Source: Epithemia pelagica
Taxonomy: Eukaryota; Protista; Bacillariophyta
Length of the DNA: 64,000 nucleotides
Direction: 5' to 3'
Assembly (NCBI GenBank): GCA_946965045.2
Contig: OX337239.1
Location: 1,054,001-1,118,000, forward strand
Under the pieces are notes generated by a model. That model had not been told where the DNA came from. It saw only the letters and a program-made list of their open reading frames with translations, and did not search any database. Below are positions 37,666 through 57,025 of the stretch, in pieces (the first letter of the stretch is position 1; every line of letters starts with the position of its first letter). A program made the position numbers and the translations under genes.

Positions 37666-38679
37666 TCACCGCACGGCGGAATCTTTGCCAGGAGCAGGAT
37701 TCCAAAACTCTTCCGAGGTGCGTTTGGCAGACAATGGAGTGGGTGTTGGAGTGTTGTTGGTAGGGAAGCGCGCCAAAATGCGTCGTCCGTGCAGTTGCAG
37801 CGACCGTCGCAACTGTCCTCGTCGAGCACAGGCCCTGCGATGTCGTTGAATTGCCAGGACTTGGTCTCGCACCAACGTCAATTCGGATCGAGGACTGCCC
37901 GAACTGCGACAAACATCCTCGCGTACGGCAACGGGCAAGACAAGTTGAATAGTGTCGCGACGAGGACCGCGATGCGCTTCGTACTCCTCAATGGACAATT
38001 GTACATGATGAACGGCCGTCCATTGAATCGTTACGGGGACGCCACTGGAGACACTGGGATTGTCCCCCAATTGCATTTCGTGATCGTAAATGTCCAATAC
38101 ATGCCATGTAACGTGGTGTCTTTCTGTTTTCGAACTGCCAATGATGGAACTCGATTGCTTCAAACACGATTTGATTGGTCTTTGTACTTTGGCTGGATCC
38201 ACGTCGTTCGCCGAGGTCATAGATATTGGTTCCGACTCGGTCTCGGCATCCTGCGTTTCTGGTAGCTCCGGACAGGAACCCAAGTCCATGACAAACAAGG
38301 GCTCCACCAATTTAGTATCGTCTTTTTCGTGGTCCACATCAAAGGTGTTTGTATGCTCCTCCTTTATTAATTGGGGTTTCTGACTGTCCTCATTTTCCTC
38401 GTTTTGGACTTGTTCCAGTAGCAACAAGGAAAAGGAGCTGCTGCTATTGTGGGAAGACATGGAGGAGCCAAGGGTGGCATCTTCTACAGGGCCAGAAGAA
38501 GATGCTTGAAAGAAAGAATTGCGACCAGACCGTCTTCTTCTTCGTCGTCCTTGAGGACGGCCAAGCAATTCCGAAACTTTGTCGGTCGTCGTGTCTTCTT
38601 CTTCTTCTGAGGCTCTTTGTTTGGACCAGGATGCATCTCGTTTGGATACAGCTCGTTTCGGAAGGGCAAACAAGGTCAT
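37666..38679 (-). CDS. Hypothetical protein with 'HVTW...LGDNPSVSSGVPVTIQW' motif (possible PP1-docking, CSRNP-like)
   Basis: 337-aa ATG-started ORF. The motif is shared with the ORF at 47116-49368 and is preceded by 'KSCLK'. Confidence 0.7.
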   Translation of the reverse strand: MTLFALPKRAVSKRDASWSKQRASEEEEDTTTDKVSELLGRPQGRRRRRRSGRNSFFQASSSGPVEDATLGSSMSSHNSSSSFSLLLLEQVQNEENEDSQKPQLIKEEHTNTFDVDHEKDDTKLVEPLFVMDLGSCPELPETQDAETESEPISMTSANDVDPAKVQRPIKSCLKQSSSIIGSSKTERHHVTWHVLDIYDHEMQLGDNPSVSSGVPVTIQWTAVHHVQLSIEEYEAHRGPRRDTIQLVLPVAVREDVCRSSGSPRSELTLVRDQVLAIQRHRRACARRGQLRRSLQLHGRRILARFPTNNTPTPTPLSAKRTSEEFWNPAPGKDSAVR

Positions 38680-39295
38680 CCTTAGAAGCCGTTGGTATGT
38701 TTGGATTGCACGTGTACAAGAAATTTCTTTTTGCGGTTGAGAGACTCCGTTTGCGTTGTAGGATCAAAGCACAAAAGGAGGATATGAGTATGAGAGCGTT
38801 TGGTTTTTTATAACACAATTGCGAAGGCTTCGAATTGAGGGCTTTCGGTGATGCTGTTGCTGCTGTTGCTGTTTGGCTACGGTGTTTGGATGAGTGAATT
38901 CGTGTTGAGAGGGACCCGGTTCTTCGCGGCTGAACCACGCACATGCACAAGAAGTTCTCGTACGGCCCTACTGACCACACTCCATCACCCTTTCCGGTTA
39001 TTCGCGATTTTACTCTGAAATAAATAGTACGCCTACTGTTCACATTTTTGAGAGAAAATATAAGTAGTGTACAAGTTTCGCACAGTTGACGTTGTTGGAG
39101 CTGTTGAGACCTCAAAAACGAACACCCCAATGGCACCTAAAAGCAGCCATTTTATTACACTCCCGAGAGATATTTGGATGCGGCCTTAACACCATTTGTT
39201 AATGACCAACATGAGAAAGACTCCAAGGAGTATCAAAATGGAAAATATACAAAAATGAGACGTCACGACGACAAAATTCGAGAAAAACGACACTA

Positions 39296-39326
39296 CAAGC
39301 TGGCTCACATTTCGTAGTGCATGAGT
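39296..39326 (+). repeat. Left terminal inverted repeat
   Basis: Pairs with 46255-46285; preceded by TA. Confidence 0.93.
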
Positions 39327-39493
39327 ATATTAGTGTACAGGACTGTACCGAGAAAAAACTTGTACACAAAACTCCACAGTGGAAAATCCGCAGCAACCAT
39401 GACAGTGGGACGGCCCGATGTTTGGGCAAATACGATGGCATTCATGGCCTCAAACACTAGAACTGCTGTTACTAATCGACTAAGTAGGTTCTA

Positions 39494-40000
39494 TTAGACA
39501 TCTGCTGTGAAAAATAGGTTCTGGGTGGGGAACTTCGTCGTCATGTAGCCCAGAGCAGTCTTGAGCTCGTTCATGTGGAAGAGGCTCATATAGATGGTCA
39601 GGACCATTGGGTCCATGCTGCTCTTGGTATCAATTGTGCAGCGTGTATAGAATTGAATGCGGCCCTTCTTCTTGCTGGAGTCCGTGGGTGAAAGAACTTC
39701 CTTCATCACGGTCTTCACAATGAACCCAACTGGCAGCACGAGCAGCGGGTCAGCGAACTCAGATCGCGCTTCCCTTTTGTAGAAAGCCAACCGAAGATAG
39801 TCGGTGCTTGTCTCGCGTTGGAGGAGAGCATGCCCACGGTCCACAACATTTCTTCCATTTCGTTCTTCCTTGTCATCAACAATGTCCGACACGAGAACAT
39901 TCACCCTATCTGCGTAGAAACTTGTCCGAAAGTTGCACCGACTTTTGTCATTTTCAGGGCCGTCATGGTCCTTGTTGAAATAGAAGTCAATCTCCTCCAT
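39494..40000 (-). CDS. Transposon cargo: 168-aa protein, predicted PH-like fold
   Basis: ATG-started ORF inside the TIRs. About seven alternating-hydrophobic strands followed by a C-terminal amphipathic helix 'LFHMNELKTALGYMTTKF'. The fold call is inference. Confidence 0.65.
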   Translation of the reverse strand: MEEIDFYFNKDHDGPENDKSRCNFRTSFYADRVNVLVSDIVDDKEERNGRNVVDRGHALLQRETSTDYLRLAFYKREARSEFADPLLVLPVGFIVKTVMKEVLSPTDSSKKKGRIQFYTRCTIDTKSSMDPMVLTIYMSLFHMNELKTALGYMTTKFPTQNLFFTADV

Positions 40001-40281
40001 GCTTGTCGATTGTGGAAAACTGTTTACTCCACGCCGAGTTGATTGTTAGATTCAAATCACTTTTGTTTCTTGTTTGCGTATCGTTTCCGGATGCATCCAA
40101 AATGTGGGAGCCACACGGGTTGGTCGGATCTTGGGCGCGCACCGCTTTCCGTTGGTCTATCCGTTGCTCTAAGTAGGTTGATTGAGTTTGGTCTTGTCCG
40201 AGCATGCACATTCCCACATGCCATCCAACCAACACACAGCATGGCGAGTTCTGTGAGTGTGGGTCTCACAAAAAACAAAGC

Positions 40282-41214
40282 ATGAGCAGCAACAGCAACC
40301 ATCGCTACCCAAGTCGTACCCGCACGAAAACGGCAATCTTCCTGGAGGACATCAAGGAAGAAGCTGCTGTTACTCCAGGGAAGCCTTCTCGAGGAGGAAG
40401 GGCATCGGCAACGAAGCTCCCTCCGAAGAAGAGCTCCGGAAAGAAGAATGCCAGGAAAAAACGCCGGACGAAGAAGACAAATCCCGAGGAGCTCCCCCTA
40501 CCCCAGTCTCCAGAGTTTGTTATTTCCAAGGTGGTTGGGGAGACTCCGGACAACAGCGGGGTTGACAAGAAGCTGGCAGGAGGAGGAATGAACGACGCTG
40601 TGGTATTGGTGCCGGCGGCCAGCAGTGACGCAGAGAAGAGGTTCGAGACTGCGCTCAAGGAAGCGCAGTGGCATCTCATCCTTGGTGATGCCAATGGAGC
40701 AACAACACTTATGATTGGTAGAAACTATCAAGGCACGGGTAAGAAAGTCTCCATTGGAGAGATCGTGGAAACGCTCCGGCAAACCGAGAGCAGCCACAAT
40801 CCCAGAATTGACAAAACAGTCAACAACAATGGTAAGTTGAACGTGGACTCTTTGCAATTGAAATGAGCTTGTACTGACCTTGTATTGTTTTCAGGACAGG
40901 ATGGAATGATGGTAACCAGCACTCCCTTGAAGAAGGAGGACGATTTGATCGCTGAAGCGGAGACTGTTGCAAAATCCAATGTGGATTGGCAATACATGAC
41001 GCCAGGTGAAAAGCACGCACACAATCGACGTGAGGCGGAGAAGACTGTGCAGTTCATGCCTGGAAGTCGTGCATTTGAGCCGCAGCACAAAAGCCCGAGT
41101 CTCTTTTGCGAGGATGCTTCGGATGACCACGCAGCAACTTACGATTCACACGTAGATGATGGATTTGAAGATACGCAGGAAAATAGTTTTAGTCAGGAGT
41201 ATTACAAGTTCTAG
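40282..41214 (+). CDS. Transposon cargo: spliced ~289-aa protein with basic/NLS-rich N-terminus
   Basis: Exons 40282-40831 and 40895-41214. The 63-nt intron has GTAAGT, a TACTGAC branch site and a TTTCAG acceptor, and joins the two ORFs in frame (N-G|QDG). 'KKSSGKKNARKKRRTKK' tract. Confidence 0.75.
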
Positions 41215-41285
41215 TTACATATAAGAAACCATATCTAAATATTGAAGAATTGCTGTTGTTTACTGCTACTACTGCCTTAGTTCTT

Positions 41286-42389
41286 CTACTCATCTTCGTC
41301 GTCATCTGAATCCTCATCGTCCTCGTCATCCGAATCCTCATCATCCTCGTCATCCGAATTCTCTTGTTCTTCATCATCCGAATCCTCATCATCCAAATCC
41401 TCATCTTTGTCGTCATCGTTGCCATCATCGTCTTCTTCGTCGTGGTCGCCATCCGAATCTTCAGAAGTGTTGTCGTGTTCATCCTGGCTTCCTGCCCTCA
41501 TGCCCGACACCAGATTGTAGCACCAGAAGATTTCTTCATTCTTCTTGATGTTTCGTCTCGCTGTTGCCTTGAGCTTCGTACTGACTTGGACATTATAACA
41601 CTTGGCATCCGGGTCGACGGATTCGTTGGTCTTGTGCTTCTCGTACTGTGGATCGTTTGCAAAGTGCAAACCCATCCAAAGGTCTGATGCAGATGGATCC
41701 ACGAAGGCAAAAGGCCTTGTGCGCAGTTGAATAGCGTAAGCAGAAGGCGGACGGGACTTGTCCAAGACCTTCCCACAATAATATCCAAGCATTTCGCCTT
41801 TTTTGTAGGGCTTTGCTGCAAAAAGCCCAAGACGGGCGTTGTCCAAGGTTGATCGCTTGATCACGAACAGATCTTCGTCGAGGTACCGAACAATGCACTC
41901 GTACTTTTGTGAATTGTCGTTTAGGTCCACCATCATTGTCCCCTCGATGAGTAGATTGTCCTTATGTTTCTTGTGCTTTCCAGTCCCTTTCTTCTTGTTG
42001 TACTTGCTGGGGGCGTAGTGCTTGACTGCTGTGCCAACAGGTTGGCCCTTGGTGTCGTGGCCCTTCCGCACCTGTGCACCTTGAATGTTCACGATGCCCT
42101 TGATGTGGGAGGAAATGAACCGATACATTTCGATTCTTTCCTCCAAAGTGCCATTACCGAACAGTACTTCTAGCTTGGCCATCAGATTTTCTGCCTTCAC
42201 TGCCCGCGGAGTTCTTGTTGTCGCGATCTTTTTTTTCGCTCGTTCTTTCTGGTTGAGCTCATCCATCTTGTATTTTCGATTTTGCTGCTTGCGAGGAAGC
42301 TTTGAAGGACGATACATTGCTGCTTTTGCTCCTTTTGTCTTGGAGCGTGTCTGTCGCTGGGTAGCGGATCGTGTCTGTCGCTTTCCCAT
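41286..42389 (-). CDS. Transposon cargo: SET-domain (lysine methyltransferase-like) protein with D/E-rich tail (~367 aa)
   Basis: SET motifs 'RLGLFAAKPYKKGEMLGYYCG', 'LHFANDP' and 'ATARRNIKKNEEIFWCY'. Basic N-terminus; about 60-aa acidic tail with DEDDEDSD repeats. The first ATG is at 42389; the frame is open to a GTG at 42449. Confidence 0.88.
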   Translation of the reverse strand: MGKRQTRSATQRQTRSKTKGAKAAMYRPSKLPRKQQNRKYKMDELNQKERAKKKIATTRTPRAVKAENLMAKLEVLFGNGTLEERIEMYRFISSHIKGIVNIQGAQVRKGHDTKGQPVGTAVKHYAPSKYNKKKGTGKHKKHKDNLLIEGTMMVDLNDNSQKYECIVRYLDEDLFVIKRSTLDNARLGLFAAKPYKKGEMLGYYCGKVLDKSRPPSAYAIQLRTRPFAFVDPSASDLWMGLHFANDPQYEKHKTNESVDPDAKCYNVQVSTKLKATARRNIKKNEEIFWCYNLVSGMRAGSQDEHDNTSEDSDGDHDEEDDDGNDDDKDEDLDDEDSDDEEQENSDDEDDEDSDDEDDEDSDDDEDE

Positions 42390-42751
42390 GGTCGTTGCAA
42401 GCTGCTGCACTTTTTGCTGGGCTGCCGAAAAACTCTGGGACCGCTGCACTTTATGAAAGGGATCTTTGGGGGGTAGAAGGCGCAGAAACGCCCCCTTTCA
42501 GCTTCCGAATGAGTGTGGTGTTGAGTGAAAACCGCATTGACAGTAATCAGACTGTCGTTTGTACAATGTGGATCAGACTACTTGTCACCCTTTCACCAAT
42601 GAACTTCGCAGACCCTCGGGGGTTCAAAAAAAGGATTTCTCATTTTCTCACAAAATCTCGGAAGATGAAACAGGGAGAGGTCCTTGTGCATGACGACGTA
42701 CAAGTATGAAAGCTCTAAGGTACGTAAACACTTTGAATTATAATATTAATT

Positions 42752-45700
42752 TCAGCGTTCAGCTTCTTGTGCCTCCTTCCAGACTTGCTGGATGAAGGAA
42801 TGCTCTTGATCCAGCGTACAACGGTGAGTCTTCATACTTACATTCACATACTTCTCAATTTCTACAAACAGGATGTCGTTCGTTGTGCCCTGGTTCTTCT
42901 TGTCAAACAACTGATAGGTGAGCATATACCGCCGTGCTTTAGCGGAGAACTTGCGTACCGTGCTCAATGTCACTCTGCCAATACTCGTTCTCACCACTTC
43001 CATGAACTTTGTCTTCGTTGCTTTCTTGCTCTTTGTCAAGCGACGGAAGTATCGCTTTCCAAGACCCCATGCGTACTCGATCCCTTCACCCGCGAGTTCG
43101 CAGTGGTACTTCGGTGTCACAAGGATCTCAAGATTGCGAGAATATCGCTTTGAGAGATCAACCGCCAGTTGTTCGAGGGCGGATCTCTCGTTCTTGAAGT
43201 CCTCACATGATCCCATCAGGTAAGTCAATGAGTATTTCTTGTATTCTTCCATCATGTCATCGCGGACCTGTCCTGAACCATCCAACCATGTCTTACTCAC
43301 ATCCTTGCGGTATTCCTGGAGCTTGGTGGTGTCAATGAAACCACGCTCGCCCAGAACTTGGAAGAGACCCTTTGGTTGCCCGAGCCAGCCCTGCTCCATG
43401 ACAACTTGGTCTACCTCGGTTGGTAGCTTCCTTGCTGTCGAAATTGCCTGGAGCTGGTCAAGGGATTTGGAATGGTAGGCTTGAAGTGCCCTGTCGCCAT
43501 GTTGAGCTCCTTGTTGAATGTCATTTCAAATGAGCTCACCAATCAATTCTTTCTTGGACAGCTTGTGTTTCTTTGTTTGATTGGCTGGGTGGTCGAACTT
43601 CATTTGTTGTCGTTGCTCCTCCGTCAGAGGAACACCCTTAGAAGCAAATGGGCCAGGGTCCTCATCTGTGTAGACCATGGACTGCTTGGACCCTGGCTGA
43701 AGACGATGAGGGTGTGGATATGGACCAATGGACTCAACAATGGTCTCATGCATCCTGGGTACAACTCCACCCCAATCCTTGTTCATCGTTTTCTCGTTGA
43801 GCCCATCTTTCTGTTTTCGTCCGTGGCCACTACTGTTGTCAAAAAGAAAAACAAAATCAAAAGATGGGTACAGGATCATCAAACAATCAACCAAGTCCTC
43901 GAATTGGAGGGCCATGTGGTCGTAGTTCCACCAGCCATCATTGTTGGATCCATAGTCAAAAAACGTGCAAAACGCGCTGGCATCGGTGATCTGCCGGAGC
44001 CGCTTGTGCGTGCCACCAAGGACTTGTTTGGCAGAGTCATCGGCCAAGTAGGTCTGTTGCCTACGGGATTGATTAATTGCATCAATCTTCTCGGGCGTGA
44101 GCAGGACAACTTCGCCTGCGTTGTCCGAATAGAAGCCCCATGCCCGACTCACAAATGCGCTGAGCATGAGTCCATGCCCATTGTCTTTTGGCAAAAGGAC
44201 TCCACGCCCTTGATGGTCCCCCCAACTCTTCTTTGAGAAAGACCATTGCTTGAAAATGGCCTCATCTTGGCCAACAAGGACAACAGGACGACGGTCCGAT
44301 GGGAAACGATGCGACAAATTTCCTCCCAGCAGCTTGTTTTCATCTTTGACATAGGATGAAAACACCTCGGGAAAACAATCAACGTGATACTCCCGCATTT
44401 GTTGATTGGTTGTTGGGTCTTCAAACTCAAAGGCCCAAACGTCCTCCATGAGCTTTTCTGACACACCCTCAATCTCCCCGTGTTCCAGTTTGATTGCTTG
44501 GGTAGCAGGTATCTGGACCCACCGATGTGCGAGCTTCTCCAGCTCGAAGTAAGTGGAAATGAACTGCTTCCGGGCGGCGATATTTTCCGGATCTTCGTGG
44601 CGGTCCGTGTAATAGGACTTTTTGGTTTCAGAAAATCGAAAACCAGCATAATTCAGCATCTTCCATGCTGTACTTACAGAAACACTGGGGAGATTCACTT
44701 TTTGGCGGAACTCATCCAAGGTTAGCAGCCCTGTGATGGATGGCTCCCCGTCTTGGCTCTCCGTGTCTATCTCTTTCTGATACACCACGGGGATCAAAGT
44801 ATCCCGGATGTACGTGGCGGCCGTCTCGCAGGAAAGGGTCTCCAAACGTTGACTGGCCCACTTCTGCAACAACTGGAGTGCTTCTGGGTATTGTCCCAGA
44901 AAGTATGGACATGGCTTCTTCCCTATCTGGATGTACCAGTTTGGATGGGGGAAGTTGCCATTGACCCGGAATGCAACATTGGCTCGTTGCACAGTCTGCC
45001 AATGCTGCAGACCGCGATACGACATTTGACTCTGGTCGGTTGCATATTTGCAACACGACGTCCACGTGGCACCATCCTCCATTGTTTGGAGAGCTCGTTG
45101 ATATGTCAGCCTAAGAACCCTCATTCTCATGAGCATTCTTGGGATCTGGGAGTCTTGGGGTGGCTCATCTTCACCCTTGTTGATGAGAGACAAAAAACAA
45201 TCAAACCGTTGTTCCGCCAATTCAAGTGACTCAATCCACCGTTCCAGCTTCTTTCTCGTTGTCTCCCCATTCACTCTCGGACCAAAGATTTTGCTCACAA
45301 CGGGCCGGTCGAAGAAATCTACGGCAGAAGAGTCACTGGAGGCATTGGAATGCTCATTGTTGTTGTTGTTTCCATTGTCGTTTCCTGTGCCTGTGGTTGT
45401 TGTTGTTGTGGTGGTTTCCAGTGCCTCTTCCAAAATCTGCTCTGGGCTTGGTGGTGATGACGCTGCCGTTGTGGCAGTTTCATCATCATCCTTGATTGGT
45501 GTTGTGGGTTTCTTGCGTTTGTTCCTCCCTCCAATTCGAATCCGATTGTGACTTATGAAGTTAAGCCACTCCTCATTCGTGTGGTTGAATTGAGGTGGTG
45601 GATCGGTCTGACGAGCCGAAACATAGTAGAATATTTGTTTCCCACCTCGACGTCGCACCTCGTGGCGGTAGATACCCTTGGGATTCCACTCTTGCGATAG

Positions 45701-45907
45701 GAAATGGAGTCGCCATTCACTACCTGAGCGCATTAAAGATCGATTCATCATTGTTGCGTCGGATAATTCCGGAATCCACTGCTTCAAGAAGACGGCAATC
45801 TCAGCGTCAATAATCCACCGGTTTGTCCAGAGGAAGCGTATTGGATGGCATCTGAAGCCAAATTCGTCGCATATGGTTGTGTATGGCCCTGTATATGATT
45901 GGACCAT
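42752..45907 (-). pseudogene. DDE transposase (~1,050 codons) interrupted by a single in-frame TGA
   Basis: The ORFs 43526-45958 and 42752-43399 share one frame; only the TGA at 43528-43526 separates them. Motifs 'YTDRHEDPE', 'VGQDEAIF', 'YGSNNDGWW', 'FLFDNSSGH', 'PKGLFQVLGERG' and 'TPKYHCELAGEGIEYAWG'. Confidence 0.88.
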
Positions 45908-46254
45908 TTTGTCTGTTCGGGCACAGGCAGAGAGATGGAGGATGAGGGGACTGCCCACGATGTTCGACAGTAGCTACTTTCACTGCTCCTGGAGACTGAA
46001 CCACAGGTCGAAATGCGCGACACCCCTATGATTTTCTACTACTTTTATATCTATCCTATCGATTAGGTTGGGTGGTGTTTCGCATTTCGACCGGCGAATG
46101 GCCATCGTCGCATGAAGCGGTCACTAGGCGTTATTGCATTTTGCATTTTTCAATATGTGCGTGACAAAATGTGAGGAACACGAAAACCGTAAGTGATCCG
46201 AAACGCTGGGGTACTGTGGGCTAAAGTGTAGTATACAATTTCCCACTATGAAAA

Positions 46255-46285
46255 ACTCATGCACTACGAAACGTGAGCCATCTTG
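46255..46285 (-). repeat. Right terminal inverted repeat
   Basis: Pairs with 39296-39326; followed by TA. Confidence 0.93.
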
Positions 46286-47115
46286 TACGACAGATTCGCA
46301 TCTCCTGAGAATTCCCCCATGGCGTAAATCGTAAATCAGAACCTACCCTCGACAATGGCCCACGTGTAGCGTGTACGAGTACTCGTACGAGTAGGTGTAC
46401 AATAGAGCTACAAGTTACAAGCCTCTCTATTGTACTCTTACCTCGATAGGAGCTCTAGGAGTAGAGTAATTCCAAAGGCACTCCGTGTCTATCTACTTCT
46501 TCTACTCCTAACTCCAAACCCCTCATACTCCTATGAGTTTCAACATAATATATCATGCATCATGTCAAATCAATCATTTACTCCAAAGTGGTTTTGTATT
46601 GCAGATTCGTAATCTCCTCGATACTTGAAATCGTATCTCATGATATTCTCATGCTATTTAATAATGATGAGTGGAGATATGAGATATACAACTGTGGTAG
46701 AATAACGACTACTAGAGGACTCTCTAGTTATGGATGGATGGATATGGGATAGTCTCAGTTTTGCTCCTCCTTGGACAAATACTGGGATAATCTCTCGTGT
46801 TGCCTACCGGCTGTGGCAAGAAAAGGAACACCACCGCAACCATGCGGTGACAAGGGCAGGATAGAGCAAAGGGAACTGCCTGACAACTGGGATGCAGAAC
46901 AATAATACTATAAGACCACATGCTCTGGAATCACACAACTCTGGAAGAACAGCAGACGAAAGAAAAGAATATTAATAGCGAGACAACTACTAATGTGCTA
47001 GTAGTTGTAGAAGCAGAGCAAATCGTGGAACGAATGGATCATGCTTGCCGTTCCGGTAGAATGTTGCTTGTCGGTAGTCTACCTAGTAGAGGTTGTGCGT
47101 GTGTGTGCTGTGATT

Positions 47116-49368
47116 CTATAACAAGAGCGCTTCTTGAGGATGACAATGATACAGTTTGGCAAAATGGGCACCAAATTCAATGGAATCATTCACATCCAAT
47201 AGTACCATGGGGGCATGGGGATGACGCGGTTGGGTAGACCACCAATACGAGGAGAATGACGACGATGACGACAAGGAGGACCCAAAGCCAAACCAATTGC
47301 TGGACCAAGAAGTTGTTTGAGATGGTTGTTGTTGTTGCAGAGTGGCAAAAAATCTCTTGGCGCTTGCTTGTCGTTGTGCTTGAATGCGTTGAACGGTTCG
47401 TTGCGCCCGTTGCAAATCACGTTCTTGTCGACGCGTTGAGGCCAAGAACACGAGCAAACTGGGTGTGGCAATGGAATTGGAAACGGCCAATGATTTACGG
47501 TTGGCTGTCGTTGATGTTGATGTTGTTGTCTTGCGTTGAAAGTCGGCTTGTCGTTGTGCCGTCAAGGCTTGCAAACACAAATCGTGTCGAAGTTTTTCCG
47601 ACAGGAGCAGTTGCAATCCGGAACGATTTCCATGGGTACCATGGGCATCCGACATTTTCCAAATGGACCGGAACTCTTCCCTTTGGTCGTTGTCATCGTC
47701 TGGGTCTTGGACCGGACCCAATTGGTACACCACAGTGGTTTGGGGTGTCTCCTTCTTGGTGTCCGTCGTGTTGCTTTTTTCAGTGTTGACTTTGGTGTTG
47801 TTGTTGTCATCATGCACAATGTCATCGTGGTTATCTTGATCCAAATTGTGCCATTGCAATGTAACGGGGACTCCGGATGTGACACAGGGATGATCGCCCA
47901 AGGTCATTAAATGATAATAGACCGTGACGGTGCCCCAAGAAAGAATACAAGGAGGACGACACGGAACTGCCGAGTCCATGTCCTCCTTTCTGGATGACAC
48001 GAACGACAGAGGGTGGGAGGGTGTTGCCGATGGCGGCGGCATCAATCCTTGCGCCTGAAGGAGCAGTGGATTGTCAAAGGGGTTTTGAATCGCAAAGGAG
48101 GATCCATCGTTGTTGGTAGTCGTAGCAGTGAATGTGGAAGATGGAGCAGTAGAGGAAGGGTGGTGATTGTCGTTGTGGTGGAATGGTATAGCAGGTTTGT
48201 CGGTGGGTGGTTGTCGATCCTCCTTGTTGTCATAATAGGATTGTTCCAACGACCCTTGGAGGGTGGATATTTTGAGACACGAAACGAGCCGTTGGCGTGG
48301 AGTACTTCTTGTTGCTGTGGTGGTGGTTTTGGTCGACGGACCTGGAAGCTGCGGTCGTCGTCGTCGCCGTTTCGTCAAGTAGTGTCGTTGCCATTTGAGT
48401 AATTCATGCCAGGCTTTTTGTCGTTGCGTTTGCCGTCGCCACAAATGAAACAAATACCAAAATCGTGCCGTGGCCGACGATCGTGTTGGGGTGGCACACG
48501 TATCCATGCCATAGACGTACAAGTCGTCCGACGGTGGTTGTGCCGTCGTGGTGCTTGTTGTGCTTGTGCTTGTCGTTGTTGTGCTTGTTGTGCTTGTCGT
48601 TGTTGTCGTTACCGGTGACGTAGAAGGGTTGATGAATGGCGGCTCCCTGTGAGAGGATGGTGGTTGCAACGCAGGAACAGCAGCCGGTCGAAGCAGTCCA
48701 TCGCCAAATTCCAAGGCATCAAAAAAGACATCCTCGTCCGGATCGTCCGTTGGAAAATGTGTGGTGGTACTACTACGACGACACGTCTCATTGTGCGGCG
48801 TTGGTACCGAGTCCAACGACGACGACGATGGTAGTGGCAGCACAGCACTGTCGTTGGGATGCGGCTGGGACGACATGGACAAGGGCGTTTGCGTTGTAGT
48901 GCTGGTCGAAGTGGTTGTGGCAGTGACAGTGGTCGAGGCGCACGACTGTGCGGCCAGACCTGCAGGGTCGTCCTTTCGCGCGCTTGTTCGTTGCGGTGGT
49001 GGTGCTGCTGCTGTTGCTAATGCTTGTGCTTGTGACAGAGTCGTGGGAACGGAGTGGTGAATGACAGTCTTGTGGTTGTCCTCGTCGTCGTGGTTGTTGG
49101 TCTTGTGGTTGTCCCTCAAATTCTCGCACGTCAAACCCACTGTGGGAGATTCCCTTCCTTCAGGAATGGAATCCAAATGATCCTGCTTGTTTTCAACGTG
49201 GTTGATACTGTCACGGCCATTGGTGTTGATGTTGTCGTGAGTGCCGTCCTGGATTACAGGAGGCTGCTCAATACGTTTGTGGTCGTGATCGTCGTCCTCC
49301 ATGGGATGATGATCATGATGATTGTGGTTGTATTTGTCCCAGGCCAAGGCCAAGAACGACGGCGGCAT
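47116..49368 (-). CDS. Low-complexity hypothetical protein with 'SWGTV...LGDHPCVTSGVPVTLQW' motif
   Basis: 750-aa ATG-started ORF, T/P/H-rich. It shares the core motif and a downstream 'V..E.LR.D.C....Q..R' helix pattern with the ORF at 37666-38679. Confidence 0.7.
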   Translation of the reverse strand: MPPSFLALAWDKYNHNHHDHHPMEDDDHDHKRIEQPPVIQDGTHDNINTNGRDSINHVENKQDHLDSIPEGRESPTVGLTCENLRDNHKTNNHDDEDNHKTVIHHSVPTTLSQAQALATAAAPPPQRTSARKDDPAGLAAQSCASTTVTATTTSTSTTTQTPLSMSSQPHPNDSAVLPLPSSSSLDSVPTPHNETCRRSSTTTHFPTDDPDEDVFFDALEFGDGLLRPAAVPALQPPSSHREPPFINPSTSPVTTTTTSTTSTTTTSTSTTSTTTAQPPSDDLYVYGMDTCATPTRSSATARFWYLFHLWRRQTQRQKAWHELLKWQRHYLTKRRRRRPQLPGPSTKTTTTATRSTPRQRLVSCLKISTLQGSLEQSYYDNKEDRQPPTDKPAIPFHHNDNHHPSSTAPSSTFTATTTNNDGSSFAIQNPFDNPLLLQAQGLMPPPSATPSHPLSFVSSRKEDMDSAVPCRPPCILSWGTVTVYYHLMTLGDHPCVTSGVPVTLQWHNLDQDNHDDIVHDDNNNTKVNTEKSNTTDTKKETPQTTVVYQLGPVQDPDDDNDQREEFRSIWKMSDAHGTHGNRSGLQLLLSEKLRHDLCLQALTAQRQADFQRKTTTSTSTTANRKSLAVSNSIATPSLLVFLASTRRQERDLQRAQRTVQRIQAQRQASAKRFFATLQQQQPSQTTSWSSNWFGFGSSLSSSSSFSSYWWSTQPRHPHAPMVLLDVNDSIEFGAHFAKLYHCHPQEALLL

Positions 49369-50091
49369 GGTTTCTAGCTACCAACAACCAAGCACAGAAA
49401 AGAACAAAGAAACACAGACGGAGGTGCCGTCCATTCGTTGGCCTGTGCCGAGTGTGTGTGTGTGGGTGTCAACAGTGATCCACGACACCACAAGAAAGAA
49501 TGGAAAAAACAACAGCCAGTGCGGATCTTGGATCCTACCAAGATATGATAGGAACGACACCACTAAAGGGTTCAAGAATGAGGAATTCGAAACGAAGGAA
49601 AGAGGCTACGAATGATCACCCAACTTGATGATCTACCGCATCAACAAAGCTGCCACCGACACCGACACGGACGACCACATCTGAACCGCCGAACGACGCG
49701 AGAGATTCGTTCTGCATGGTGGGGGATGGACGACCGACAACACGTACTTTGCAGCCAAAAAGATAGTCCGTTCCCCCTACTTGGAACATGTGGGGTTCGC
49801 TTTCATACCCCCGAAATCGAATTCGGGATGGGCGGGGTGCCTCCGACGGAAACAATGCAGCTGCAGTCCAACCGTTGGAGTACGTACTTCAACAGTTCTA
49901 TCGCATATTAGTCGCTATTTTGGAGAGCGTGATTACTGATGACCTAGCTTCACTAGCTAACTATTGGATCTCAATCCAATAGTTTTGCTGCTTCACCTTC
50001 ACCACATCCATTGCGAGGAAAAACCACCAAGCCTGCACCTCCGCTAGTCCCGAAAAGGCACACCACACGCACGGCGACACCACCACCCGTC

Positions 50092-53000
50092 ATGCAAACA
50101 CTCTCTGGTCTCCGAAACCGCAATTCGCGAAGCAAAGACAACGCAAAACACCACCATGGTCGACACCACACCACCACAACCGTCACGCCCAACCCCGTGG
50201 GAAGGACAGACCGGCCTCGGGCCCAAACCAACAAAGGGGGAACAAAACCCACGCCAATTTTGGCCAACAACAACCAAACAGTCATCAAGCCCAACGAAAG
50301 GACACAACACGTTGCTTTTAAACCAACCGAACAAAAACCCACACCGTCAGAGACAAAAAAGACCCAACAGCCAATCCCGACGAGGACCATTGCGACTCAA
50401 ACAACCCACGTGGACAACGGAGAAAGACATCACTTGGGCCCAATCCAACTACGTCAGAACCAAGATCACGCCGCTACCCTACGCCCAACAGGACAACCAA
50501 AAGACTCCCCAAGGCACTTGCCAAATGCCCAATCCCCTCAGCAACCCCTCACAATTTCTCGGGAAACCCAGAACTTGCCCCAAGCCTCCAGCAGAGACGC
50601 CAGCCATCGACAGCCAACAACCCAAACCATGCAACTCCATTCGAAGCCAACCAACAGCAAGCAGCCTCCCCGCCGCCAAGTCGCGGCCAGGGCCAACACC
50701 CCTGGATCCCCAAACCGGGAAGACTTTCCCCCCCTCCGTCCCAGCCATACCATCACGCCCGCTCGTGTCAGTCGCCCAACCAACAAAGGCCGCGCCTCCC
50801 CGCCCGCAAACAACAACAACCACCATGCTCTGACCGACCAAGCCACGGCCACCGTCACCATCACCCCCGTCCACCACCGTCACCACGAAACCGAAACCAC
50901 CACCGAGACCGACCACAACAACAGTACCAACCACAAAAATATTGAAAACCAGAAAAACGAAAACGAAAACACCTTTAAAACCCAGAAAAAACAACACCCA
51001 GACAACACCACGGAACCGAACCACCACGGAGAACACACGACCTTGACAGACAACCACAACGAGGACGACACAGGAACCAACAACTACGAAGGCGACAACA
51101 ACGAGACGGCGGCAACCCCGACCATCCAAAACCCATACCGGCCCACGAAAAAGACGGCCAAAAGCCTCCTGACGCCCAAACCAGGCCCCAAAAAAGAAGC
51201 CCCGAGCATCCTCATCCACCTACATGTGGCAGTGGTGCACCATACAAACCCACAAGTGGAGTCATCCCTCCCACGCCTCACGGAGAAATCCATCAAAGAC
51301 CACATCAGCGACATCCTCGCCCACCACAGCCATCGCCAGGGCGAAGACCCAATGAGTCTGCAGGTTCACCGAGTGGACTTTCTTGAAACGAAACAAGGCC
51401 CCCGCAACCCACCACGCCAAAACAACAACAACGAAACGACGGGCCGCGGAACCAGGAACCACACCTCCTCTTTCCACGTAACCCTCTCACCGGCACCAAC
51501 CAACGACCAATTCGACAGCGACGTCTTCATGGACCAAGGCCTCCGCTTGGTCACCCAACTTTGGCATCGTCACCACCGGGACGACTACCAGTTTGACGAA
51601 AGGGGCGACCAATGCGTGCTACGAAACGGCACCCCACAATCAAACCCGACGGTCAACCCCAGGTTTGACCAAATCAACATTTACACACCGGCATGCAACA
51701 ACCGCGCATGCGAAACACACGGCATCGTGGCAGGCATTCCAGCCTCGGCACTCAAACACCGCCGCAGCCTGGTCAACTTGGCCACAACCATCCGGAACCT
51801 CCTCACCCCACACTTGCCCGACAAACTTCAAGGGCTTGATTTCCACAACCACATTGGATGCCGCGCAGGAGTCTTCAGCGGAGAACTGAAGTCGAAACAG
51901 CGCGGACAAGTCCCCGTCATCTACATCGCCGCCTCGTCGCGATTGAACTTCGAAAGCCTGATGCGCTCCTACAACGCACATCAAACAACCAACCAAAACC
52001 AGGAACTCTGCTGGTTCGACAACTGCATCCAACTCCTACCGATGCCAAAGACTCAAGCTGCCAGGACCACAACACTGGAAGCACTCAAAGATCTTGACCA
52101 ACATTTCAACGCATGCGTCAAGATCCGCCTCCGCCCAATAAACTTGGAAGCAACCGAGGAAGACTGGGACCAACTAGCCGCCATGGAAGAATTTGCCGGA
52201 CTCTTTCCAGAGTATGCAAACGCCGACCCCGACCCCGAATCCTACACGTTATATCTGCGACGCACCCCGGATACACATCACTTGAACGCAACTTCCATTC
52301 GACAATACGAGAACTTCCCCGACAACATTTTGCTCCCCACCATGGCCGCCATGGCCGCGTCGCCACCGAGGCCACTGGACGCCAACAACCCACACAGCCC
52401 ATCGACAGGAAGCCACACCAACCGCCTCGTTGCATTCACAACCAGGATCCTACGACGACGCGCAAACCAAACAGACAGGACCCACAACGAAGACACCGAA
52501 CCAACAGACGAGGAACAAAGCCGCGGCGACACAAGGACCCGCACCAGCCCCCCCGGCACACCACCACCGAACAAACGACCATGGCAGGACAACAACGATC
52601 CATACGAAGACGAAACAAACTGGCAGGAAGTAGTCGCCAACTCCCCTCACCTCCGGTCGCCGCCACACGAAACCACCGGAGAAGACAACACCAAACCACC
52701 CGCCAACAACAACAAATTCTCGCCTCTGGCAGACAAGCGAAACGACACAGAACATTCCGACGACGAAGCAGAATTCGACGACGACGCCATGGAAACCGAG
52801 GAAGGCACCGACGGTTCCCAACCATTGATCGACGACGACACGGACATCCCCCAGTCCGGAGCAACAGCGAACGAAATGGAAACAATAGCCAACTACGTTC
52901 GCACCCATAACCCATCGAGACTGCCGGACATCCAGCGGTACCTCCACGACATTCGGTCTTTCTGCACCGACCAAGACGCGCAAGACGCGTGGGATTACGC

Positions 53001-53097
53001 ACAGTCCTTGATCGAGACTGACGATCCCACCGTCGCCGGCCCCCGCACCGGCCATGTGGTCCCGCATGACAAATGGGCCAAAGGGCCAAATGAGTGA
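50092..53097 (+). CDS. Retrotransposon ORF1 (~1,000 aa), no recognisable domain
   Basis: The frame is open from 50011; the first ATG is at 50092. Disordered basic N-terminus, structured-looking core (about aa 400-790) and acidic C-terminal region. Its stop overlaps the ORF2 ATG. Confidence 0.8.
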   Translation: MQTLSGLRNRNSRSKDNAKHHHGRHHTTTTVTPNPVGRTDRPRAQTNKGGTKPTPILANNNQTVIKPNERTQHVAFKPTEQKPTPSETKKTQQPIPTRTIATQTTHVDNGERHHLGPIQLRQNQDHAATLRPTGQPKDSPRHLPNAQSPQQPLTISRETQNLPQASSRDASHRQPTTQTMQLHSKPTNSKQPPRRQVAARANTPGSPNREDFPPLRPSHTITPARVSRPTNKGRASPPANNNNHHALTDQATATVTITPVHHRHHETETTTETDHNNSTNHKNIENQKNENENTFKTQKKQHPDNTTEPNHHGEHTTLTDNHNEDDTGTNNYEGDNNETAATPTIQNPYRPTKKTAKSLLTPKPGPKKEAPSILIHLHVAVVHHTNPQVESSLPRLTEKSIKDHISDILAHHSHRQGEDPMSLQVHRVDFLETKQGPRNPPRQNNNNETTGRGTRNHTSSFHVTLSPAPTNDQFDSDVFMDQGLRLVTQLWHRHHRDDYQFDERGDQCVLRNGTPQSNPTVNPRFDQINIYTPACNNRACETHGIVAGIPASALKHRRSLVNLATTIRNLLTPHLPDKLQGLDFHNHIGCRAGVFSGELKSKQRGQVPVIYIAASSRLNFESLMRSYNAHQTTNQNQELCWFDNCIQLLPMPKTQAARTTTLEALKDLDQHFNACVKIRLRPINLEATEEDWDQLAAMEEFAGLFPEYANADPDPESYTLYLRRTPDTHHLNATSIRQYENFPDNILLPTMAAMAASPPRPLDANNPHSPSTGSHTNRLVAFTTRILRRRANQTDRTHNEDTEPTDEEQSRGDTRTRTSPPGTPPPNKRPWQDNNDPYEDETNWQEVVANSPHLRSPPHETTGEDNTKPPANNNKFSPLADKRNDTEHSDDEAEFDDDAMETEEGTDGSQPLIDDDTDIPQSGATANEMETIANYVRTHNPSRLPDIQRYLHDIRSFCTDQDAQDAWDYAQSLIETDDPTVAGPRTGHVVPHDKWAKGPNE

Positions 53098-56000
53098 ACG
53101 AAAGACAAAAACCCCCCGACACTGTCCAGTACCCGACTGCCCATGGACAGTGCCATCATCATCAACCAACCCCCATGCCTCCCTGAAGGAACACCTAATC
53201 ACCGAGCACAACGAAACTCACCCATCAGACTACCTCACACCCCAATATTGCAACCAGCACGGCTTTCATCCATGCCTCAAATGCGACACGCCCACCGCCA
53301 TCTTCACTACGGAAGGGCATCTAAGACAACACGTAACAAAAAAACATAGTAGGACGAAAACAAACCTCCAGTTAGTCCTACAAACCTACCGACATTCTCA
53401 ACCAGAAACTGAGAGACAATGGAAAGATAGCTTAGCTTATCTGCACAAACTACAGCTTTCACCACCACCATTCCGCCGAAGTATCTGGCACAAACTAAAG
53501 CCTCCCATCAAAGCAGAATTTTACACAACATACAACACGGTTGTGTCTTGGATCCTTGAAGCAACACCACCCCTGTCCCCCTCGGTCCTGAAGGACGACA
53601 GACCACCACAACACGACATCGACGCCAGTCCCTTTTGGAAACTGTTAATTCTATTAGAGTCCCTCCTGCTGGCACCAATCAAAGGAACAGTGCACCTCAC
53701 CTATGCAAACGCCTTTCGAGCCCGGCTCTCCTGGTTTAAGACCGGCAGACTCGAAGAACTCCACCACATCATCTGGAATCCAACACCGCTCCCAAAACAG
53801 GGCGCAAGCAACAAGAAAAAACAGAAACAACGACAACAACATCACCCCTCCCCGTCCGACCAACTGCCACAATGGCGTCTCCACTCAGCTCAACAATTAG
53901 CCGACCTTGGCAATTACCGAGCAGCAGTCAAACGACTCACAACAAACACACCACCAGCAACATTGACCGCACCAAGAGTCGAACGTTGCCAGAACGAACT
54001 CTTTCCACTAAGACAACGACCACCCCCGTCAACAAGATCACATGGTCAACCAACAATGGGACCCCCAGCCGCCCAGTATTTAAAACTGACAGACGAGTCC
54101 TTCGAAAGGGCACTGCGGCAGATGTCACCGGGGACGGCCTCTGGACCGTTCTCCACATGCATCGACACCATCGTGTCGATGGCTCTCCACAAGACAACAA
54201 AAGCGCCGAATGCAACAAGACCGTACTTCCGCAACATCAAATCTCTCATACAACTCGTAGTGACTGCCCAAGTACCGACAACAATCCAACCAATTCTCGC
54301 CAGCAATTACTTTCTTGCTTTGCATAAAGACATGAACAATCTGGAACGGCTACGACCAATTGGGATTGGAACAGCCATCCGAAGAGTAGCAGCCAAGACA
54401 GCCCTGGTACACCTTACCGATGCCATTCAACCCCTCCTGCTCAAAGGAGGCCAGTACGGCATACAAGTACCAGGGGGAGTCGATTTTGTCGCCCAAACCA
54501 CGGCCATGGCAGTGCGACAATACATCGACCGAAATCCAACAACGACAGACTCCTCAACCACATCAACAACAACCGAAAACCGGACGACAACGACAAACCC
54601 ATCAACACCATCAACAACAACCGACAGTCGGACGAGACCGCCGAGCCGAGCACTGGTCATGCTCGATCTAACAAATATGTTCAATAATGTGAGCAGAACT
54701 GAAGCAAGAAAAATCTTGTTAGAGCACGACGAAACAACACCACTGGTCCCCTTGTTTGACCTGTTAACACAACACACCTGCAAGCAATGGTACTTCGACG
54801 AAAACAAACAAGCAAAGTTTTTACGGCAAGAAGAAGGGTTCCCCCAAGGCTGCCCTTTGAGCCCGCTATTCTCCTGTCTCGTCTTACTGGCCTTAACAAA
54901 CAAGCTGAACAAAGAACAAGCCAAAAGAGCACAACAACGACAGCGCAACAACAACCCACACGACGACGAAATGGGCGGAGTAGGACACACCGCATCCATC
55001 ATGGATGACACATCAGTGTGTTTGCCCCACTGCGACGTCCCATGGTTCCTAAAACGTTTCGAAGCACTCGGTCAGCCTTTGGGAATCATTTTGAACAAAA
55101 GCAAAACAACAATTCTTACCTCCACCGACGGTACACCCCCCGACACGCTAGACCCAACCGACAAACAGTTCCTCAAACAAGCGCTGTCGTTCCTTTCTCC
55201 CGCCGACCCGGCAAAAGCCGAGATCACAAACGGGGTACGATTTCTCGGACAGCCTATAGGTTCGAGCAACTTCGCCCAGCAATACATCCAAAACAAATTG
55301 AAAAAGATGCATCACAAACTGGACGTTTTCTTGCAACTGCAAGACCTCCAGACCAAACACAACCTTTTCAAATTTACCATGATATCGTCCCTGTTGCACC
55401 TGCTACCATCAGATGTCTACCTGGCGCACACAACAACAAATCCAAGAACAACGCTTTGGTCCAGCCCAACAACATTAGAGACAGAAAAAATCGTCGCACG
55501 CTTTCTATCAGAACTCACCTCGCTCCCCGAAACCGAGATCAGCTCTTCGGCTTGCCTCATTGCGGCAATGCCACAACGTCTTGGAGGCCTCGGCTACCAA
55601 CAAGCGGCCACATCGGCGTACCCACGATTGCTAACCCAAACGGCACGAGCAATCGCCTTAGCAACCTCTAGCGAAACGCCAATCCCGAGAGTCCACCAAA
55701 GGGAACTTAACAATTGGCAAGAAAGCACCGATGAGTACATGACAATTTTCAGAAAAACACTTTCACTCTACGCCAAAGAATACGCAGAAGAACAATTGTA
55801 CACACCAAAGAGGTATGACCATACCACTCACAACAGGCTACTCCATCACACAGTCCAAGAACATACTCTACCGCGCTTGGTAGCCGAAACCCCACCAGAA
55901 CAACGAACCTTCCTCCCCGGTTTATTGTCGCCTCTCACCAGTTTGGCCCTGTCCCTACCTTTGACAGCAACACAGTTTCGCTATCCAAACGAAGTATTCC

Positions 56001-57025
56001 AAACGGCAATCAAAAGAAAATTGCGGCTCCCCTTGTTCGTGAACGATCCAACCCAGTCTTGGCCCCAGAAATGTCGCTGCTCCAAAACCAAGACAATTGA
56101 CCCTCTGGGAGACCATTTGTTCTCATGCACCTCCGCTTCGAAAACAGCCCTTTCGAATGCAATTCGAGACACCTTATTCGACGTACTACGACAACTCGCA
56201 CCTGCAGCTGGAACAGTCGAAACCACCCACGACGTCCACGTTGAGCCACCTGGTTTGGCTCCGCAACACGAGCGAAACATACGGCCCGCCGATGTCGGGA
56301 TGCTCCTCCGCAAGCCACACCGCAACGACCACTTTCAATATGTGGCGATAGACATCACCATTCCCCCACCTCAACAACCTTTGCCAATCCACGACCCGTC
56401 CGACCACAAAACAATAGCCACAATGGCATCAAGGGCGCATCACGAGGCAGCAAGGGCTAAGTTTTGTCGGGATCCACAAACAGCAACACACCTGCTCCAC
56501 AACGGCGTTTATCTCTTACCATTCACCGTCGACCACCTGGGTTCCTTGGGATCTTTCGCCAATACCCTTCTTTTCCCATCAGAATATCACCACCCAACCT
56601 TATCAACAAACGAACCTCCGCCATGGGATAACCCCTTTTTCGGAAAAGACGAAAAGAGAAGTAAATCACATCCAGCGGCTTACGCACTCTTTCAACAACT
56701 AAAAGAAGCCCCAAACAACATGCTTACAAAGGCAAACAAAAACACAAAGAAGTTTAGCTATCCAGAGGCTAACATATACACAATCGGACACTATGCCAAA
56801 GCCTCACTGGGCCATGCAATCATCTCGGCATTGGCCAACCACGCCAATAATAACATCACAGCGATAAAACATCACCAATCCCTTCGAAAAACTCGAATCA
56901 CACAGTTGCAAAATCTGGCAACACCGTGTTTTGCACCAGTCACTCCGATCTACTCCCCGGCTCCAATGGCACAGTTCATCACTGCCACGGACACAGCCCC
57001 ACTCCTTTGCGAACTCCCCGCTTAG
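53090..57025 (+). CDS. Retrotransposon ORF2: C2H2 zinc fingers + reverse transcriptase + CCHC finger + restriction-like endonuclease
   Basis: Fingers 'CPVPDC...HLITEH' and 'CLKC...HVTKKH'. RT motifs 'LRPIGIG..IRR', 'LDLTNMFNNVSR', 'GFPQGCPLSP', 'SIMDD' and 'GVRFLGQPIG'. 'CRC...DPLGDHLFSC' and RLE 'RPADV...AIDITI'. Confidence 0.93.
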   Translation: MSERKTKTPRHCPVPDCPWTVPSSSTNPHASLKEHLITEHNETHPSDYLTPQYCNQHGFHPCLKCDTPTAIFTTEGHLRQHVTKKHSRTKTNLQLVLQTYRHSQPETERQWKDSLAYLHKLQLSPPPFRRSIWHKLKPPIKAEFYTTYNTVVSWILEATPPLSPSVLKDDRPPQHDIDASPFWKLLILLESLLLAPIKGTVHLTYANAFRARLSWFKTGRLEELHHIIWNPTPLPKQGASNKKKQKQRQQHHPSPSDQLPQWRLHSAQQLADLGNYRAAVKRLTTNTPPATLTAPRVERCQNELFPLRQRPPPSTRSHGQPTMGPPAAQYLKLTDESFERALRQMSPGTASGPFSTCIDTIVSMALHKTTKAPNATRPYFRNIKSLIQLVVTAQVPTTIQPILASNYFLALHKDMNNLERLRPIGIGTAIRRVAAKTALVHLTDAIQPLLLKGGQYGIQVPGGVDFVAQTTAMAVRQYIDRNPTTTDSSTTSTTTENRTTTTNPSTPSTTTDSRTRPPSRALVMLDLTNMFNNVSRTEARKILLEHDETTPLVPLFDLLTQHTCKQWYFDENKQAKFLRQEEGFPQGCPLSPLFSCLVLLALTNKLNKEQAKRAQQRQRNNNPHDDEMGGVGHTASIMDDTSVCLPHCDVPWFLKRFEALGQPLGIILNKSKTTILTSTDGTPPDTLDPTDKQFLKQALSFLSPADPAKAEITNGVRFLGQPIGSSNFAQQYIQNKLKKMHHKLDVFLQLQDLQTKHNLFKFTMISSLLHLLPSDVYLAHTTTNPRTTLWSSPTTLETEKIVARFLSELTSLPETEISSSACLIAAMPQRLGGLGYQQAATSAYPRLLTQTARAIALATSSETPIPRVHQRELNNWQESTDEYMTIFRKTLSLYAKEYAEEQLYTPKRYDHTTHNRLLHHTVQEHTLPRLVAETPPEQRTFLPGLLSPLTSLALSLPLTATQFRYPNEVFQTAIKRKLRLPLFVNDPTQSWPQKCRCSKTKTIDPLGDHLFSCTSASKTALSNAIRDTLFDVLRQLAPAAGTVETTHDVHVEPPGLAPQHERNIRPADVGMLLRKPHRNDHFQYVAIDITIPPPQQPLPIHDPSDHKTIATMASRAHHEAARAKFCRDPQTATHLLHNGVYLLPFTVDHLGSLGSFANTLLFPSEYHHPTLSTNEPPPWDNPFFGKDEKRSKSHPAAYALFQQLKEAPNNMLTKANKNTKKFSYPEANIYTIGHYAKASLGHAIISALANHANNNITAIKHHQSLRKTRITQLQNLATPCFAPVTPIYSPAPMAQFITATDTAPLLCELPA

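Follow-up and report, generated by a model that had tools for sequence, protein, structure and literature searches.

A probable family of recently active DNA transposons at TA sites that carries a SET-domain gene and two further long-held genes in a diatom genome

The element, its ends and its copies

The window analysed here is a stretch of 64,000 nucleotides from the diatom Epithemia pelagica (contig OX337239.1, positions 1,054,001 to 1,118,000 of the forward strand), and within it a unit of about 7 kb holds four genes between inverted repeats (Table 1). These encode a transposase, a protein with a SET domain that scores above the Pfam threshold, a basic protein whose gene is spliced, and a protein of 168 amino acids (aa) that we call p168. 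We consider it likely that this unit is a copy of a recently active DNA transposon family of a eukaryotic nuclear genome, which inserts at TA sites and carries the SET gene together with two more long-held genes. All four coding units that a preliminary description of the locus had listed are present, and the frames of the three accessory genes, which it had called intact, are open over 367, 289 and 168 aa.

The same description had reported inverted repeats of 31 bp, identical at 29 positions and with TA on both sides. Both 31-bp arms were found again with their two mismatches, a pairing of which none is expected in shuffled sequence, and TA directly abuts each of them. The terminus CAAGCTGG is kept across all lineages of the element family, and the GC content of the element resembles that of its flanks. 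By analogy, the TA may be taken as a duplication rather than as the outermost base pair of each repeat.

Table 1. Features of the element (positions are those of the window)
Feature	Position	Strand	Remarks
Whole unit including flanking TA	39294-46287		6,994 bp, four genes between the repeats
TA, p168 side	39294..39295	.	Presumed target-site duplication; TA common to both ends in all compared copies
Terminal inverted repeat, 3' end relative to transposase gene	39296..39326	+	Begins CAAGCTGG
p168, 168-aa accessory protein	39494..40000	-	Predicted PH-like fold; most conserved accessory gene (dN/dS 0.12)
Basic protein, exon 1	40282..40831	+	Lys/Arg-rich N-terminus, small conserved core around QWHLILGD-NG
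Basic-protein intron	40832..40894	+	63 nt, GT-AG (GTAAGT...CAG), contains in-frame stop
Basic protein, exon 2	40895..41214	+	Acidic C-terminus; spliced product 289 aa
SET-domain protein	41286..42389	-	367 aa from conserved ATG; N-terminus basic, followed by the SET domain and a long tail rich in Asp/Glu
Transposase, C-terminal 257 codons and natural stop	42752..43525	-	Presumed catalytic E944 (43076-43078); cut off in window copy
Premature TGA, codon 794 of transposase	43526..43528	-	Six other copies CGA or CGC (Arg)
Transposase, codons 1-793	43529..45907	-	D548 (44264-44266), D690 (43838-43840)
Terminal inverted repeat, 5' end relative to transposase gene	46255..46285	-
TA, transposase side	46286..46287	.

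That the unit is mobile, as had been proposed from its repeats and TA, is borne out by seven full-length copies in unrelated flanks. Six of these (L001 to L006) come from one public assembly, ERZ21939226, and were reached through two close database relatives of the SET protein and through the contigs of the transposase cluster; in all six, homology to the window element begins and ends exactly at the TA and repeat. TA is present at both ends in every one of the ten elements with both ends identified, namely the seven full-length copies and three further elements introduced below (L008, L091 and L092). These ten lie in unrelated flanks and sit on nine contigs, one of them in a second assembly.

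The seven full-length copies form two sub-families. Sub-family A consists of the window copy, L001 and L006, with mutual identities of 98.9-99.35%, and sub-family B, about 86% identical to A, consists of L002 to L005. Three members of sub-family B (L003, L004 and L005) are 99.90-99.96% identical to one another, and L005 has no private substitution at all. The repeats of sub-family B differ from those of A at matching positions in both arms, as expected for functional ends. Furthermore, 25 transposase sequences fall into one 90%-identity cluster, and many different contigs occur among the 15 listed. The family appears to have been recently active, and since some copies are 99.9% identical the element may still be moving.

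Two patterns of substitution were seen among these copies. Along the first ~1 kb (45289-46287, which spans the repeat, the 5' region and the first ~200 transposase codons) the identity of sub-family B with the window copy is 97.5-99.5%, but beyond it only 70-93%, and the synonymous divergence (dS) between the sub-families is 0.07 as against 0.52; such a mosaic points to recombination or gene conversion between A and B. In the window copy, L001, L006 and L002, changes from CpG to TpG or CpA account for 22-43% of private substitutions while CpG sites make up ~9.5% of positions, an excess that fits cytosine methylation of the copies. A separate observation concerns a stretch of ~270 bp, 79% identical, that lies upstream of the insertions of L002 (5961-6229) and L005 (6188-6450), at 31 and 171 bp from the element; both lie on the same contig ~30 kb apart, and the stretch is no empty site but a local repeat.

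Four genes, their age and their relatives

All three accessory genes recur in every full-length copy bounded by repeats and TA, and the same four genes extend to far older relatives in the same assembly as L001 to L006. The transposase of L008 (8.8 kb, TA at both ends) is 57% identical to that of the window element, that of L091 (8.4 kb, TA at both ends, repeats identical over the 28 terminal bases compared) is 56% identical, and that of L007 has 38% identity by tblastn and 41% when aligned; of L007 only the 3' end was located, and a search for its 5' end did not place it. Each of the three keeps the order transposase, SET, basic protein (on the reverse strand) and p168. The identity matrices of the transposase, SET and p168 share one shape, in which A and B lie nearest to each other, L007 lies farthest off, and L091 and L008 fall in between. 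Between sub-families A and B the ratio of non-synonymous to synonymous substitution (dN/dS) is 0.14 for the transposase, 0.27 for SET, 0.30 for the basic protein and 0.12 for p168, at dS of 0.40-0.65, and as judged by these ratios the three accessory genes are shown to be under purifying selection. The shared order at 38-57% transposase identity, the parallel divergence and the low dN/dS together mark the accessory genes as old, selected genes of the element; these comparisons exclude a recent capture, as well as host genes that happen to lie between two fortuitous ends. The label of a composite element that had captured its cargo is accordingly dropped, because the four-gene order persists down to 38-41% transposase identity.

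One element of another make-up lies in a second assembly, ERZ25042306. This is L092 (9399-11163), an element of 1.77 kb with CAAGCTGG termini and TA, whose sole gene encodes a 242-aa homologue of p168. It is surrounded by piggyBac and Copia fragments and is a naturally occurring derivative, from a second genome, that contains p168 alone.

Relatives with a transposase alone were found in environmental sequence. A scan of Joint Genome Institute (JGI) metagenomes with an alignment of 12 closer sequences gave 390 transposase relatives, from which 80 loci were fetched. Six contigs hold complete elements of 3.35-3.6 kb with inverted repeats that adjoin TA and with space for the transposase alone, and some of these environmental elements share the CAAGCT terminus next to TA. 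No SET, basic-protein or p168 gene was detectable in the 80 fetched loci, and the large neighbouring open reading frames (ORFs) with a Pfam match at these loci encode Copia or MULE proteins. Compared in this way, the three accessory genes look like a gain in one lineage. In four of the transposase-only elements (L009, L057, L011 and L056) the inverted repeat aligned by blastn extends 2-3 bases past the TA on both sides (e.g. CGG-TA ... TA-CCG), which could reflect either a palindromic target around TA or true ends that lie farther out.

The preliminary description had overlooked a premature stop in the transposase gene of the window copy, which is unspliced and not intact. Its full frame (42752-45907, minus strand) is broken at codon 794 by a TGA, where an Arg codon, CGA or CGC, stands in all six other copies, and the change is a C-to-T transition at a CpG (CGA to TGA). 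An uninterrupted transposase ORF of 1,049-1,051 aa is present in L001 and L006 as well as in sub-family B, where the ORF called in L002 measures 996 aa. A spliced transposase, with an intron joining ORFs of 810 and 215 aa, was considered for the window copy and rejected, because the six other copies read through with Arg; read against these copies, the two ORFs are one frame broken by the TGA. The window product would retain D548 and D690 and lose the last 258 residues including the Glu motif, and since the stop removes the presumed catalytic Glu, the window copy is probably non-autonomous.

The transposase belongs to a large family, which counts 2,550 representative clusters at a threshold of E<=1e-3 (992 if this is set to E<=1e-10) and in which three motifs are invariant or nearly so: G-Q-D-E-x-x-F, F-D-x-S-x-G-H and A-G-E-G-I-E-Y-x-W. 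Enzymes of the Tc1/mariner type carry parallels to each of these, in D-E-x-x-F, D-N-x-x-x-H and P-I-E-x-x-W. D548, D690 and E944 form the presumed Asp-Asp-Glu (DDE) triad, in which the second Asp and the Glu are separated by ~253 residues, versus 34-41 in IS630-Tc1-mariner enzymes, with a conserved insertion of ~235 residues (roughly 691-925) between them. In the confident AlphaFold model (predicted local distance difference test, pLDDT, 84.9; predicted template modelling score, pTM, 0.70), D548 is placed on a long strand and D690 at a strand end, a long helix begins at E944, and the insertion is folded between. When this model was compared with the PDB by Foldseek, chains of the Mos1 mariner transposase took the first four ranks and seven of the first 17, although as weak matches (E 0.045-0.7, template modelling (TM) score 0.2-0.3). 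Against viral models the sole strong match was an 805-aa Sylvanvirus protein (E 2.9e-17, probability 1.0) with the database name 'Tc1-like transposase DDE domain-containing', a name that is annotation only. Scans of IMG/VR for a viral origin, with patterns of the transposase and of p168, found nothing. We therefore describe the enzyme as Tc1/mariner-like with an unusual ~253-residue spacing, a likeness of motif and predicted fold in which membership of the superfamily is not proven.

The SET domain (PF00856) scores 34.3 bits in the window copy against a Pfam cut-off of 22.4, with 23.9 bits in L007, above the cut-off, and 21.5 bits in L008, just below it. A G-x-G-like motif (RLGLFAA), an Asn and the tyrosine of E-E-I/L-x-x-x-Y are kept in all four aligned SET sequences (A, B, L008 and L007). 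By sequence, the closest solved structures are EZH2 and PRDM2, both weakly matched. Searches for the origin of the gene, with the whole protein and with the SET region, returned only the element's own copies. The N-termini of the SET protein (42320-42389, M-G-K-R-Q-T-R-S-A-T-Q) and of the basic protein (40282-40340, S-R-T-R-T-K-T-A) loosely recall, in what we take as an impression only, the tail of histone H3 (A-R-T-K-Q-T-A-R-K-S).

The intron of the basic-protein gene measures 63 nt in sub-family A and 65 nt in sub-family B, where splicing is thus required to hold the frame. p168 is predicted to adopt a pleckstrin homology (PH)-like fold, its model showing a sandwich of seven strands and a C-terminal helix at 140-156 that caps it, and Foldseek matched this model about equally to RanBD, PTB, Vps36, Rtt106 and p62 domains (probability ~1.0, TM score 0.4-0.5), with RanBP1 scoring best (E 1.3e-3). 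Sequence searches with p168 found no relatives outside the element family. An assignment of p168 as a Ran-binding domain was rejected, there being no sequence-level match to the Ran-binding family.

Around the element, the insertion is flanked by ORFs at 37666-38679 and 47116-49368, both on the minus strand and without a Pfam match, which look like tandem paralogues because they have in common the stretch ...LGD-P-V-SGVPVT-QW.... Six ORFs at 4124-35292 carry a vacuolar-sorting-receptor thioredoxin-like domain (PF25011), a sign that this gene family has expanded locally. The region 50011-57025, with two long plus-strand ORFs of which one has an RVT_1 reverse-transcriptase domain, is probably a retroelement, and the sequence at 50-52 kb shows a strong negative GC skew and a positive AT skew. 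An Rfam scan of the window gave no match.

A proposed role for the accessory genes and its alternatives

Our model for the element begins with its 1,051-aa DDE transposase, which would move it by cut-and-paste into TA. The SET protein would act as the enzyme and the basic protein and p168 as its targeting or binding partners, the three acting jointly on chromatin proteins. By methylating lysines of chromatin or other proteins, the SET protein could, with its partners, favour the element's expression, its integration or its tolerance by the host. The window copy, whose ends are intact, could be mobilised in trans by its sister copies. We infer the chromatin role solely from the SET domain; of the 'chromatin-directed' cargo in the preliminary description, this domain is what stands, while p168 offers a predicted PH-like fold and no domain is recognisable in the basic protein.

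A fuller version of this model, which we offer tentatively and regard as possible more than probable, treats the three accessory proteins as a transposon chromatin module, with SET as the writer, p168 as a histone- or peptide-binding adaptor and the basic protein as a DNA-targeting or histone-tail-like targeting subunit. Such a module would set the lysine-methyl state on the nucleosomes of the element or at its target sites, and would have been essential, and co-evolving, since before the sub-families split. In this version the transposase would stand for a deep branch so far without a name, or for a new superfamily, that comprises over 2,500 clusters in aquatic eukaryotes. If true, the chromatin module would let a Tc1/mariner-like element escape or steer silencing by its host.

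Several observations weigh against our model and are gathered here. The empty site expected for the window, AAACGACAC-TA-CGACAGATTC, was sought as a further check on the preliminary description and was not recovered. Exact look-ups of the two ORFs that flank the window element found no record, and look-ups of the genes that flank L003 and L004 returned occupied loci only. No uninterrupted paralogous site appeared when all flanks were compared by blastn with all fetched sequences, nor was an excision footprint found among these sequences, so that both the cut-and-paste movement and the TA duplication are presumed. Neither single sequences nor profiles, one of 25 members and one restricted to the core, gave a match for the transposase in Pfam, NCBIfam or PDB sequences, the Tc1/mariner profiles considered being DDE_3, Transposase_1 and DDE_1 of Pfam and IS630 of NCBIfam; the sole profile trace was a weak HTH_33 match (E 0.035) in one of 24 sequences. 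The fold match to Mos1 is itself weak and comes with no sequence link to Tc1/mariner or IS630 models. Accessory genes at the level of ~30% transposase identity might escape tblastn. In all four aligned SET sequences the His of the N-H-S/C motif is replaced by Asp, so that methyltransferase activity is not assured, and the substrate of this SET protein need not be a histone. No domain or assignable fold is recognisable in the basic protein, and the model of p168, built from 11 sequences (pLDDT 68, pTM 0.67), is only moderate in confidence.

These points bear on several alternatives. The one that survives best, although we judge it unlikely, holds that the accessory proteins serve the mechanics of transposition, such as nuclear import, end binding or complex assembly, in the manner of the Myb-like second protein of Harbinger, with the transposase itself or some other non-histone protein as a possible substrate of SET. 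The Ran-binding domains at the head of the p168 fold matches, the resemblance of the Lys/Arg-rich stretch of the basic protein to a nuclear-localisation signal and the atypical N-D of the SET motif would all suit such a role. However, PH-like folds of many other functions (PTB, Vps36, Rtt106 and p62) score nearly as well, the p168 sequence does not match the Ran-binding family, and the transposase-only relatives evidently cope without any accessory protein.

Somewhat less likely still is an origin of the transposase in another superfamily with a large insertion domain (hAT, P or Sola), in which case the TA and the motifs would be convergent. Its ~253-residue D-to-E spacing is indeed typical of superfamilies with an insertion domain, and no Tc1/mariner model matches it by sequence; but no hAT, P, MULE, piggyBac, Harbinger or CACTA model matches it either, nor does one match its relatives (no DDE_Tnp_4, Plant_tran or MULE). 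The 2-bp TA, a first strand that bears DE, a His located five residues past the second Asp and the IE..W motif fit Tc1-type enzymes, to which the Mos1 chains at the top of the PDB fold matches and the annotation of the single strong viral match add. Of the 'Tc1/mariner-type' label given earlier to the element, the fold matches and the likeness are upheld, whereas a Pfam, NCBIfam or PDB sequence match and a spacing of 34-41 residues are not.

It is improbable that the accessory genes are passengers, captured from a host, without a role and kept only because all copies are young. The copies within sub-families A and B are indeed young (98.9-99.96% identity), and the searches with SET and p168 gave no relatives outside the element family that would point to their origin. 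Such passengers would nevertheless not be expected in the same order in lineages at 38-57% transposase identity, to diverge in step with the transposase, or to show dN/dS of 0.12-0.30 at dS of 0.4-0.65, values that also answer the question of selection among copies raised earlier; and the 1.77-kb derivative in the second assembly has retained p168, alone, between its repeats.

Finally, a dispersed segmental duplication or assembly artefact in place of a transposon, for which one might cite the empty site not recovered and the single assembly (ERZ21939226) behind all related full-length copies, is scarcely credible given ten of ten elements with precise ends at the same repeats and TA in unrelated flanks on nine contigs, one in a second assembly, matching changes in both sub-family B repeats, and environmental relatives that share the CAAGCT terminus next to TA.

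Relation to known systems

The element resembles members of IS630-Tc1-mariner (Mos1, Sleeping Beauty, Tc1) in its short inverted repeats with TA at both ends, and in a DDE triad whose first strand bears DE, whose second Asp lies in D-x4-H and whose Glu lies in IE..W. It differs from them in a transposase three times longer (1,051 aa) with a spacing of ~253 versus 34-41 residues, and in the 7-8.8 kb and four genes of the window lineage versus 1-3 kb and one gene. Multi-gene elements of the Tc1/IS630 type are found in ciliates, where Tec, TBE and Sardine, of 4-7 kb and with a TA-type target, carry several ORFs beside a DDE transposase of short D35E spacing; these extra ORFs encode tyrosine-recombinase, zinc-finger or kinase-like proteins, whereas no tyrosine-recombinase, zinc-finger or kinase-like domain was found in the window element.

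SETMAR (Metnase) of primates also joins a SET domain to a mariner-type transposase, but as a host gene in which a pre-existing SET gene became fused to a domesticated Hsmar1 transposase (PMC6326780), whereas in the window element the two are separate genes of a mobile, multi-copy unit. SET genes inside DNA transposons have been reported from HarbingerS and MuDR families of Phytophthora (Kojima and Jurka 2014, Repbase Reports, cited in PMC12730594), which like the diatoms is a stramenopile. As far as that citation describes these families, the window element differs from them in having no detectable PIF/Harbinger or MULE domain and in adding p168 and the basic protein. Closest to the function proposed here are the VANC anti-silencing proteins of VANDAL (MuDR) elements and the TET/JBP genes of fungal KDZ and other transposons (PMC12730594), in which a transposon encodes its own protein directed at epigenetic marks. 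These involve other enzymes and superfamilies, and an effect on DNA methylation is shown or well grounded there, while for the window element an effect on epigenetic marks is a proposal.

Transposon-encoded epigenetic factors are therefore already known as a kind, in SET, VANC and TET/JBP, and of the possible novelty raised in the preliminary description the SET gene in a DNA transposon is anticipated by Phytophthora, as cited above. What is new, as far as the searchable literature shows (Repbase and Dfam being outside its scope), is the carrier, Tc1/mariner-like with a giant transposase, the conserved three-gene module, and the size of an unannotated transposase family. As this family of 2,550 clusters has no Pfam or NCBIfam model, annotation pipelines based on profiles probably miss such elements. 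Transposons with epigenetic enzymes of their own are rare, and they offer direct evidence on how mobile DNA fights or uses host silencing. The present family is a clean case, with very young copies, an old and selected gene set, transposase-only relatives and a p168-only derivative, and with these natural comparators the benefit of SET to the element becomes directly testable.

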